DNA of 63,946 nucleotides, filler included, from Octopus bimaculoides (Eukaryota), in assembly GCF_001194135.2 (NCBI RefSeq). It is 12 parts of 10 records of this genome, joined end to end, with 100 filler letters (N's around TTAATTAATTAA, not from the genome) between each part and the next. Parts side by side here need not be neighbours in the genome. Positions count along the whole stretch, not along the records: positions 1 to 13,562 come from NW_026436977.1; 11 more parts are not named here. One strand, 5' to 3'. This document shows, in pieces, positions 6,401-9,400 of the stretch (positions are counted from its first letter, which is position 1; each line of letters starts with the position of its first letter). Below the pieces are notes generated by a model. That model was not told where the DNA came from, searched no databases, and worked only from the letters and a program-made list of their open reading frames with translations. The translations under genes and the position numbers were made by a program.

Positions 6401-9400
6401 NNNNNNNNNNNNNNNNNNNNNNNNNNNNNNNNNNNNNNNNNNNNNNNNNNNNNNNNNNNNNNNNNNNNNNNNNNNNNNNNNNNNNNNNNNNNNNNNNNNN
6501 NNNNNNNNNNNNNNNNNNNNNNNNNNNNNNNNNNNNNNNNNNNNNNNNNNNNNNNNNNNNNNNNNNNNNNNNNNNNNNNNNNNNNNNNNNNNNNNNNNNN
6601 NNNNNNNNNNNNNNNNNNNNNNNNNNNNNNNNNNNNNNNNNNNNNNNNNNNNNNNNNNNNNNNNNCTCTCCTCCCCCGCCCATCTCTCCACTCTCCCAAT
6701 CTTGCTCCGACTCAAATAATTTAAACTGTTTTTAATTAAAATTTAACCCCATTTCCCTTTTTTTGTATTCCAGAAGCGCTCGAAACAGCTGTAAGTGCTT
6801 CAGCCGGTGAAATCTCTGTCGTGGACGCGGGTGCCGCGGCAGGGGCAGGGCCATCTAAGTCTGTGAAACAGCTGAAAGAAGAGGTGGCGTCTCTGCACAA
6901 GCTCGTCGCAGGTTCGTATATCCATGAAATTGTTTTGTTACTATCAGTAGAGTGGAGGCGCAATGGGCCCAGTGGTTAGGGCAGTGGACTCTCGGTCATA
7001 AGGATCGCGGTTTCGATTCCCAGACCGGGGCGTTGTGAGTGTTTATTGAGCGAAAAACCCCTAAAGCTCCACGAGGCTCCGGCAGGGGATGGTGGCAAAC
7101 CCTGCTGTACTCTTTCACCACAACTTTCTCCCTGTTTCTGTGGAGGCGCAGTGGCCCAGTGGTTAGGGCAGCGGACTCGCGGTTTCCATTCCCAGACCGG
7201 GAAGCGTACTACTTATTCTATCAGTCTCTCTGTTTGCCGAACCGCGAAGTTACTGGGGGGACGTAAACACACTACCAGCATCGGTTGTCAAGCGATACTG
7301 ATGGGGGGGGGGAACAAACACAGACACACAAACATATACACACACATACATATATATACACATGCATATACACATATGTATATAGACATATATACGACAG
7401 GCTTCTTTCAGTTTCCGTCTACCAAATCCACTCACAAGGCTTTGGTCGGCCCCGAGGCTATAGTAGAAGACACTTGCCCAAGGTGCCACGCAGTGGGACT
7501 GAACCCTGGAACCATGTGGTTGGTAAGCAAGCTATATATATATATATATGAGGGGCTTCATTCAGTTTCCGTCTATTAAATTCACTCACAAGGCTTTTGT
7601 CGGCCTGAGGCTATAGTAGAAGACACTTGCCCCCACCCAAGGTGCCACGCAGTGGGGGCTGAACCCCGGAACCGTGCAGTCTCGGCAAGCAAGCTACTTA
7701 CCACACAGCCACTCCTACACCTATGTCTAAGCCACTTCACTAACGAGTTAAACAATTAAAAAAAACTAATTAAGGACTAATTACCGACCCCTTTTTTTGC
7801 CCTAATTTTGTCCTAAACAGTGAAACAAGATGAAATAAACGGGCTCCAACATGATGTCAAGAAGACCCACGATCTGAAAGGGGAACTCGAACGGCGCCTT
7901 CGCCTTATTGAAACCGAGAAGAACACATTACAAAAGGTAAGGGGTCTTTGAAATATACAAAAAAGGGATTGATTTATTCGGACAATGTTTTCTTTATTTC
8001 ATTATCCAGGGTTTTAGGGTTTAGGGTTAGAGTTAGATTTAGGATTAGGATTTTAGGGTTAGGGTTACGTTTGAGTTACGGTTAGAGGGTTAGGGTTAGA
8101 GTTACATTTAGGATTAGGATTTTAGGGTTAGGGTTAGAGTTACAGTTAGGATTTCGGTTTGGGGTTAGTTACGGTTAGGGTTTTAGGGTTCCAGTTACTG
8201 TTAGGGTTAGGGTTACGTTTGAGTTACGGTTAGGGGTTAGAGTTATTGTTAGGATTAGGGGTTAGGGTTAGAGTTACAGTTAGGGTTAGGGTAAGAGTTT
8301 TAGGGTTAGGGTTTAAGGTTAGGGTTAGAGTTAGGGTTTAGGGTCACGGTTACGTTTTAGGGTTAGCCGTTAAGTATTTCGTATCCTCTGCAATTTATAG
8401 ATCCTGGGCCCAGAAATGTGTTTTTTTTAAAATTTTATCAAGAATTCTACGATATACAAAATAAATACAAGATCCAAACACGAGAATTAGGGTTAGGGTT
8501 AGAAATAAACGGACTCCAACACGACGTCAAGAAGACCCACGATCTGAAAGGGGAACTTGAACGGCGCCTTCGCCTTATTGAAACCGAGAAGAACACATTA
8601 CAAAAGGTAAGGGGTCTTTGAAATATACAAAAAAGGGATCGGTTTATTCGGACAATTTTTTCTCTTTCATTATCCAGGGTTTTAGGGTTAGGGTTACGGT
8701 TAAGGTTTTAAGGTTAGAGTTACTGTTAGGGTTAGAGTTTTAGGGTTACGGTTAATGTTTTAGGGTTAGAGTTACTGTTAGGGTTAGGGTTAAGGTTTTA
8801 GGGTTAGGGGTTAGGGTTACAGTTATTTTTAGGATTAGGGTTTTAGGGTTAGTTACTGTTAGGGTTTAGGGTTACGATTAGGATTTTAGGGTTAGGGTTA
8901 TTGTTAGGATTAGGGTTTTAGGGTTAGAGTTATTGTTAGGATTTCGGTTTGGGGTTAGTCATGGTTAGGGTTTAGGGTTAGGGTTAGAGTTACATTTAGG
9001 GTTAGAGTTAGGATTAGGGTTAGAGTTATGGTTAGGGGTTAGGGTTAGGGTTAGAGTTACAGTTAGGGTTACGGTTACGGTTAGGGGTTAGGGTTAGGGT
9101 TAGGGTTAGAGTTACGGGTAGGGTTACGGTTACATTTAGAGTTAGGGTTGGGGTTAGAGTGACGGTTAGGGTTATGGTTAGGGTTTTAGGGTTAGAGTTA
9201 CGGTTAGGATTTAGGGTTATACGCTCACGGTTAGGTTTTAGGGTTTAGGGGGCTCAAGTATTTCGTATTCCTCTGCCAGAAATGTGTTTTTTTTAATTAT
9301 ATATATATTTTTTTTTGTTTTTTTCCAGGAATTCTACGATATACAGAATAAATACAAGATCCAAACACGAGAGTTAAAGGAAGTTATATCTAAGCAGAAA

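Follow-up and report, generated by a model that had tools for sequence, protein, structure and literature searches.

The window analysed here is a stretch of Octopus bimaculoides DNA of 63,946 nucleotides (nt), filler included, the first 13,562 of which come from the record NW_026436977.1. This first part carries on its + strand what its protein matches identify as an MRCK/CDC42BP kinase gene, in which most of one coiled-coil exon, the following intron and the start of the next exon are repeated head to tail around a 12-nt insert of two telomeric repeats. We lean, by a modest degree, towards a genuine and not recent intragenic tandem duplication, whose filler would stem from a local repeat array and whose chimeric joint piece would have kept its coding capacity and probably be used as an exon. 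The exons concerned, numbered as in an earlier sequence-only reading of the stretch, are the following.

6774-6911, + strand: exon 8, 138 nt, phase 1 to 1; acceptor ttccag/AAGCGC, donor GTTCGT
7821-7936, + strand: exon 9 (9a), 116 nt, phase 1 to 0; acceptor aaacag at 7815-7820, donor GTAAGG at 7937
9329-9435, + strand: exon 10, 107 nt, phase 0 at its start; acceptor tttttccag/GAATTC, donor GTAAGT at 9436

In a sequence search, the kinase domain encoded by the concatenated exons matches that of human MRCK alpha (4aw2) with E=8.1e-123; the runners-up are MRCK beta (E ~6e-121), DMPK (2.4e-91) and ROCK1 (4e-80), so that MRCK is the closest family. The Pfam KELK domain PF15796 is matched with E=3.7e-8 (34.2 bits at a cut-off of 27) by residues 340-403 of the concatenate, corresponding to exons 9 and 10 and the next exon. 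This KELK-motif coiled-coil domain is located downstream of the kinase domain and contains the duplicated segment, whose breakpoint in exon 10 falls inside an R-E-L-K (KELK) motif (TREL/KEV). An exhaustive representative search of a 1.84-billion-protein library returned the MRCK alpha-like protein XP_060574804 of the clam Ruditapes philippinarum as best full-length relative. It is collinear with exons 8, 9 and 10, with exon 9 aligning to residues 504-541 and exon 10 to residues 542-577, and contains the region once; the single-copy arrangement is therefore ancestral. A cephalopod orthologue was not retrieved: a word-index protein search queried with the coiled-coil exons gave no match at all, and a 450-residue query returned MRCKs of many animals, none above ~80% identity and none from a cephalopod. 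Exact-pattern scans of a metagenome collection with the cores of exon 9 and exon 10 gave no match either.

Further downstream, 46 residues of the clam MRCK that belong between exon 10 and the next exon that can be recognised (11339-11518) lack an equivalent in the window. An exon is probably hidden within 9436-11338, in one of the gaps (N runs 9794-10183 and 11015-11071) or in arrays of an element resembling a short interspersed nuclear element (SINE).

Duplicated segment and its joint

The copies were compared by pairwise and MAFFT alignment, and their number in the window was determined with BLAST. The duplication extends from base 12 of exon 9 through base 48 of exon 10, positions 7832-8489 being repeated at 8502-9376. 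In the resulting order, exon 9 is followed by intron copy A and a chimeric piece, and this in turn by intron copy B and exon 10; the components are as follows.

7832-8489, + strand: duplication copy A, 658 nt, comprising exon 9 from base 12 onward, the intron with its array and a 48-nt copy of exon 10
8502-9376, + strand: duplication copy B, 875 nt, comprising the partial exon-9 copy (E9'), the intron with its array and nucleotides 1-48 of the true exon 10
8442-8489, + strand: partial exon-10 copy (E10'), 16 codons, ending inside the KELK motif; 2 synonymous differences
8490-8501, + strand: filler GGGTTAGGGTTA, 12 nt, codons GLGL; missing from both parental sites (7826-7832 and 9374-9380)
8502-8606, + strand: partial exon-9 copy E9', 35 codons (EINGL...TLQK), with the intact donor GTAAGG next to it at 8607; 4 synonymous differences
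8487-8503, + strand: 17-mer TTAGGGTTAGGGTTAGA, formed by the filler with TTA of exon 10 on its left and GA of exon 9 on its right
Joint sequence across the filler: ACACGAGAATTAGGGTTAGGGTTAGAAATAAAC

Positions 7832-7936 and 8502-8606 are identical at 101 of 105 bases, the 77 intron bases that follow at 92%, and 8442-8489 agrees with 9329-9376 at 46 of 48 bases. The homology ends abruptly at 7832/8502 on one side and at 8489/9376 on the other, and each duplicated piece is present in exactly two copies within the window. The joint reads ...ACACGAGAATTA/GGGTTAGGGTTA/GAAATAAACGGA, or in codons CGA GAA TTA/GGGTTAGGGTTA/GAA ATA AAC, in frame. Together with the flanking TTA and G, the filler forms a perfect 16-nt run of (TTAGGG)2.7 at 8487-8502, as called by Tandem Repeats Finder, and an open reading frame runs across the joint from 8367 to 8618. 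E10', filler and E9' add up to a chimeric piece of 165 nt, or 55 codons, which is open and leads from phase 0 to phase 0. The tandem duplication of exons 9 and 10, the telomeric register of the insert with the neighbouring exon bases and the preserved frame had all been proposed by the sequence-only reading, and all three are borne out.

The same holds for the donor at 8607, described there as intact: it lies inside an 81-nt run that is identical to the exon-9 donor region. This run is the longest identity between the copies (7889-7969 = 8559-8639) and comprises the last 48 exon and the first 33 intron nucleotides, donor included. It may reflect constraint on both donors, or else a short tract of gene conversion.

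Two other routes to such a structure were considered. An origin from a circular RNA or back-splice product, or from a retro-copy, is excluded by a joint that lies away from splice sites and by the intron retained in both copies. Non-allelic homologous recombination between TTAGGG arrays was ruled out as well, the ends of the duplication falling in unique exon sequence outside the arrays.

TTAGGG-like arrays and the origin of the filler

Overlooked so far were degenerate TTAGGG-like minisatellite arrays in the adjoining intron and in most other introns of the gene in the window. Six such arrays, spread over at least five introns, account for 28% of the locus (3527 of its 12400 non-N bases).

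431-764: TTAGGG-like array, inverted
1156-1692: TTAGGG-like array
3160-4430: TTAGGG-like array
5260-5702: TTAGGG-like array
8008-8374: TTAGGG-like array of the duplicated intron, copy A, 367 nt
8676-9250: TTAGGG-like array of the duplicated intron, copy B, 575 nt

Each array has its own variant higher-order unit of 14, 20, 26, 32 or 58 nt, and in all but one the G-rich strand is the sense strand. Canonical G-quadruplex (G4)-type motifs occur in the copy-B array and in three others. The arrays of the two intron copies differ by 208 nt in length; the unique landmark GTTAGGATTTCGGTTTGGGGTTAG, common to both (at 8149 and 8935), shows them to be homologous, with later divergence through indels. They are furthermore enriched in particular variants, with GTTAGAG occurring 18 times against 5 in all other arrays together and GTTAC 25 times against 6.

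In the window, the 17-mer TTAGGGTTAGGGTTAGA of the joint has four further copies, all of them in the duplicated-intron arrays. As exact matches on the + strand they are the candidate templates of the filler.

8122-8138, + strand: candidate template, copy A
8972-8988, + strand: candidate template, copy B
9039-9055, + strand: candidate template, copy B
9094-9110, + strand: candidate template, copy B

The bare 12-mer is more widespread, with 35 occurrences in the window (31 on the + strand, filler counted, and 4 on the - strand). If it is extended by GA to a 14-mer, all six copies besides the filler lie in the intron-9 arrays; 25 other copies of the 12-mer lie elsewhere. The joint can accordingly be decomposed into exon 10 (..ACGAGA, with a G>A change), TTA, GGGTTAGGGTTA, GA and exon 9 (AATAAAC..), where TTA and GA are each common to both partners: TTA occurs in exon 10 (9374-9376) and in the array motif, GA in the array motif and in exon 9 (7832-7833).

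The earlier suggestion of a break repaired with telomerase-added or templated TTAGGG stands in its second half. A templated insert is the better reading, and its template is local, because the same 17-mer is found four times in the duplicated-intron arrays only; as evidence of telomerase the filler is not supported, since the 17-mer sits in the adjoining intron. With 28% of the locus consisting of such repeats, the prior for a locally copied TTAGGG filler is also high. The filler was thus quite probably templated from the intron array, and telomerase would not be needed.

In the mechanism that we propose, a 3' end, either replicating or in repair, would copy exon 9, intron 9 and exon 10 up to its 48th nucleotide, leave its template at ..GAGTTA and re-anneal through the TTA to the telomere-like minisatellite of the intron immediately behind it. 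It would then copy GGGTTAGGGTTA(GA), switch through the GA to exon 9 at GAAATAAAC and continue from there. Such an event would be classed as template switching, i.e. fork stalling and template switching (FoSTeS) or microhomology-mediated break-induced replication (MMBIR), or as polymerase-theta end joining with templated insertion. Polymerase-theta repair is documented to leave such a footprint, in the form of tandem duplications that combine microhomology with inserts derived from the immediate vicinity (PMC7368036; PMC8654963). The array, an interstitial telomeric sequence (ITS) with G4-type motifs, may plausibly have triggered the stalling or break as well as served as template, and ITSs are known to promote rearrangements (PMC11626172). 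A literature search returned no report of interstitial telomeric repeats or of comparable joints in cephalopods.

Coding capacity of the chimeric piece

All six differences in the 153 duplicated coding bases (GGG/GGA, CAT/CAC, GAT/GAC, CTC/CTT, CAG/CAA and GAG/GAA) are synonymous third-position transitions, and they are exactly the pairs that the sequence-only reading had listed. The copies diverge by 3.9% in exon and by 7.1% in unique intron sequence, with at least eight indel events in addition. No difference occurs at the 102 first and second codon positions, in contrast to 11 of 154 positions in the unique intron (Fisher p=0.004) and to 6 of 51 third positions (p=0.001). Indels are likewise missing from the 165-nt chimeric piece, against at least eight in ~160 nt of flanking intron, and the donor with the next 33 intron nucleotides is unchanged between the copies.

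Exon 9a and exon 10 are under constraint in any case, so that information on constraint of the extra copy can come only from changes located on that copy. With this one copy neutral, the expectation is 4-7 non-synonymous changes, and none is found (P(0)=0.001-0.02, namely 0.013-0.019 with ~4 expected changes when scaled to the unique-intron divergence of 7.1%, and 0.001 when scaled to third positions). Given six differences and one neutral copy, the probability that all are synonymous is ~0.001-0.02 as well. The claim that the synonymous-only pattern is a signal of constraint hence remains significant even if just the extra copy is taken as unconstrained. The pattern argues for coding constraint on the extra copy; the signal is modest but real and survives correction for the constrained exons 9a and 10. 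By CpG logic, the CAT and GAT changes would have arisen on exon 9a and the CTT change on the extra copy.

How the chimeric piece might be spliced depends on its altered acceptor.

8440-8442, + strand: altered copy of the exon-10 acceptor, cAG/G changed to cAA/G (8440-8441 = AA), by alignment with 9326-9329

The canonical messenger RNA probably splices from 7936 to 9329 and skips the whole insert. In copy A, three substitutions among the last nine intron bases altered the acceptor, and because it now reads cAA/G, inclusion of the 55-codon cassette after exon 9a has become impossible. No AG in phase 0 is found between 8367 and 8441, which leaves the chimeric piece without an in-frame upstream acceptor. 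The loss of this acceptor had been noted before, whereas an AG shifted one base downstream, to 8441-8442, had been missed. It stands behind tgtgttttttttaaaattttatc, which contains a T8 tract, has a pyrimidine content of 0.68, equal to that of the exon 9a acceptor, and is in phase with exon 8.

Since exon 8 ends in phase 1, the path from exon 8 through 8443-8606 to exon 10 is wholly open. The putative exon has 164 nt and leads from phase 1 to phase 0, the same phases as exon 9a, and in the resulting isoform VKQD would be replaced by a second copy of 16 residues plus GLGL from the filler. Inclusion after exon 9a, by contrast, runs into a stop codon TAG at 8488-8490 that is created by the joint itself, in agreement with the earlier statement that both exons together break the frame; exon 9a and the chimeric exon would thereby be mutually exclusive by frame. 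The exon 8 to 8443 path would make both halves of the piece coding and so explain why both show synonymous differences only. The alternative acceptors put forward before, the TTAG sites with exon starts at 8491, 8497 and 8503, are indeed all three in frame with exon 8, but their context is weak, with 32-36% pyrimidines upstream and 2-4 rival AGs within 40 nt. The shifted AAG acceptor at 8441-8442, which also makes the exon-10-derived half coding, is hypothesized to be the better candidate.

A stepwise history could be drawn from these frames, in which the chimeric piece has probably been used as an exon. It would first have been an in-frame 55-codon cassette; once the acceptor AG had moved by one base, it would have been re-phased to exon 8 and turned into a frame-enforced, mutually exclusive alternative to exon 9a. 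That it became a new, selected KELK exon in this way is a tentative proposal, which we would rather doubt than assert.

Rival readings and known systems

One alternative, already named in the sequence-only reading, is an assembly artefact, in which two diverged haplotypes or read sources of a single-copy region were placed in tandem and joined through low-complexity TTAGGG sequence and the differences are allelic. The scaffold is a draft with four N runs in 13.5 kb, consistent with a strongly fragmented short-read assembly like that of O. bimaculoides (713,915 contigs in 2.34 Gb; PMC10700109), and with long minisatellite arrays, and synonymous differences without indels are what functional alleles would show. 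The joint lies, however, inside a 3.1-kb contig with the nearest N run 1.3 kb off, and no pair of contig ends overlaps at it. Neither parental flank contains TTAGGG (caagat at 7826-7831, aaggaa at 9377-9382), so the joint k-mers must have been in the reads. The shared flanks of 11 and 3 nt, moreover, are unlike the k-1 overlaps of a de Bruijn bubble, and a divergence of 3.9-7.1% with many indels is several-fold above the heterozygosity of 1.22% reported for O. vulgaris (PMC10700109). The artefact would furthermore require copy A to represent an allele whose exon-10 acceptor is destroyed. A de Bruijn false join via the shared 17-mer was rejected, the exon 10-filler and filler-exon 9 k-mers occurring nowhere else in the window. 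We also found no convincing false duplication at gap edges; the similar flanks of the gaps 11015-11071 and 12279-12605 lie within genuine tandem SINE-like arrays. An artefact is accordingly quite improbable, and if it were one, a mis-assembled exon pair would have been flagged in a widely used type of draft assembly. If the duplication is real, telomerase could still have added the 12-nt filler to a broken end ..GAGTTA-3' before this was joined to exon 9. The insert is exact telomeric sequence with zero mismatches, TTAGGG is the cephalopod telomere motif (PMC13218726), and telomerase-made interstitial repeats at mammalian breaks are real, with in-register break nucleotides as their hallmark; at least 3 such nucleotides occur at ~1/3 of species-specific mammalian ITS loci, compared with at most 1.6% by chance (PMC2246262). 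On the other hand, the duplicated unit itself offers an exact 17-nt template, both 350-370 nt upstream and 470-600 nt downstream, which exceeds the telomeric match by one base and carries the array-specific ..TTAGA continuation, microhomology-primed copying predicts the register with the break equally well, and just two repeats were added, without TERC-derived flanks. We therefore regard addition by telomerase as unlikely.

A real duplication may also have left an unused pseudo-exon in a 1.39-kb intron, its synonymous-only pattern being due to chance, CpG decay, conversion or inherited differences. The phase-0 acceptor is gone through three changes in nine bases, which resembles decay, the TTAG acceptors have the poor context described above, the 81-nt identical run could be a conversion tract, and the region is single in the clam MRCK. 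A neutral copy at 7.1% divergence should nevertheless carry the non-synonymous changes and indels that are missing here, its donor and the 33 nt beyond would hardly be unchanged, and the shifted AG gives a fully open path from exon 8. A pseudo-exon is thus a possibility to be taken seriously, if not a probable one. What weighs against the duplication with a locally templated filler and a retained coding piece, which we favour, can be stated together. The match lengths are close (16 nt telomeric against 17 nt local), so that sequence alone does not separate the two sources, and both duplication ends lie within conserved exons with the outermost differences only 11 and 3 nt away, as an artefact would have it. 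The AAG acceptor at 8441-8442 is weak, having an A at -3 and a second AG 30 nt further upstream. CpG/TpG changes account for three of the six differences, and just 1 to 4 of the six need sit on the chimeric copy, which makes for small numbers. A conversion tract would weaken the inference of constraint, and if already diverged homologues were joined, some synonymous differences would predate the duplication. Finally, one draft contig is the basis from which we infer that the joint exists in the animal, and likewise any expression.

Several other repeats were observed in the window. The intron after the kinase exon 1699-1935 contains a tandem array with a 50-nt unit (2023-2817; ~12-15 copies with higher-order periods of 83 and 133 nt). 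A SINE-like element (..CAGTTTCCGTCTACCAAATCCACTCACAAGGCTTTGGTCGGCC..) is present at 10280-10968 in four head-to-tail copies, arrayed with a period of 167-176 nt, and occurs in single copies at 6030-6126 (- strand), 7388-7530, 7550-7700 and 9540-9660, the copies being flanked by (TA)n. A second family (..CCAGCTGTAGAAACCCTGCCAGATCAGATTGGAGCC..) is arrayed in tandem with periods of 100-115 nt at 4672-4894, 11703-12174 and 12786-13315, which fall into two introns separated by 7 kb. The intron before exon 9 contains two transfer RNA (tRNA)-like heads (GGAGGCGCA(A/G)TGGCCCAGTGGTTAGGGCAG..GGTTTCGATTCCCAGACCGGG) at 6952-7030 and 7141-7200, the latter truncated; ARAGORN called no tRNA at either, and they are presumably SINE heads. 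We take the interspersed repeats of the window to resemble common octopus SINE families.

Among known systems, the closest class is that of tandem duplications with templated insertions, as produced by polymerase theta-mediated end joining or by FoSTeS/MMBIR (PMC7368036). The MRCK duplication shares all three of its sequence criteria, being head to tail over ~0.66 kb, with an insert copied from nearby and 2-3 nt of microhomology at each switch. It would differ in its template, a telomere-like minisatellite, through which the insert mimics a telomerase product. If the joint is real, it is a natural example of telomere-like intron minisatellites both triggering an intragenic duplication and supplying its filler.

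Short ITSs inserted at sites of double-strand-break repair have been described in primates and rodents by Nergadze et al. (PMC2246262, PMC7215372). Two of the three testable criteria for a telomerase-made ITS are found at the MRCK joint, namely exact hexamers missing from the empty site, for which the parental exon 9 and exon 10 sequences served as proxies of the ancestral state, and an in-register TTA of 3 nt. The register is unspecific here, as the local array predicts the same, and the key criterion, that no DNA template lies nearby, is contradicted by four exact 17-nt templates within 600 nt. The primate and rodent loci also differ in being simple insertions, whereas here two repeats only are found at a duplication joint in a mollusc, a group for which the literature search gave no such case. 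A real joint would show that a locally templated insert can pass as a telomerase footprint, which calls for caution with short TTAGGG inserts in array-rich genomes.

The internal tandem duplications (ITD) of FLT3 in human leukaemia are in-frame duplications whose filler keeps the frame, some of which span an intron, and they lengthen a regulatory segment of a kinase. The MRCK duplication resembles FLT3-ITD in leading from coding to coding sequence with a frame-keeping filler. FLT3-ITD is somatic, whereas the MRCK duplication is germline or evolutionary, diverged and located in a coiled coil distal to the kinase domain, and its canonical acceptor is changed, so that unlike in FLT3-ITD the simple inclusion of a cassette is now precluded.

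Mutually exclusive exons arise by tandem exon duplication, with frame incompatibility and nonsense-mediated mRNA decay enforcing exclusivity (PMC6071210, PMC4165533). If expressed, the chimeric exon would add to this a route to an alternative exon without whole-exon duplication, as a permuted fusion with repeat-derived codons, and would provide a lineage-specific isoform in the KELK coiled coil of a conserved cytoskeletal kinase. Like established pairs, exon 9a and 8443-8606 are adjacent and homologous, both lead from phase 1 to phase 0, and their joint inclusion gives a premature stop. The duplicated unit, by contrast, consists here of a 3' exon part, an intron and a 5' exon part, and the putative exon would be a permuted fusion of 164 nt next to the 116 nt of exon 9a.

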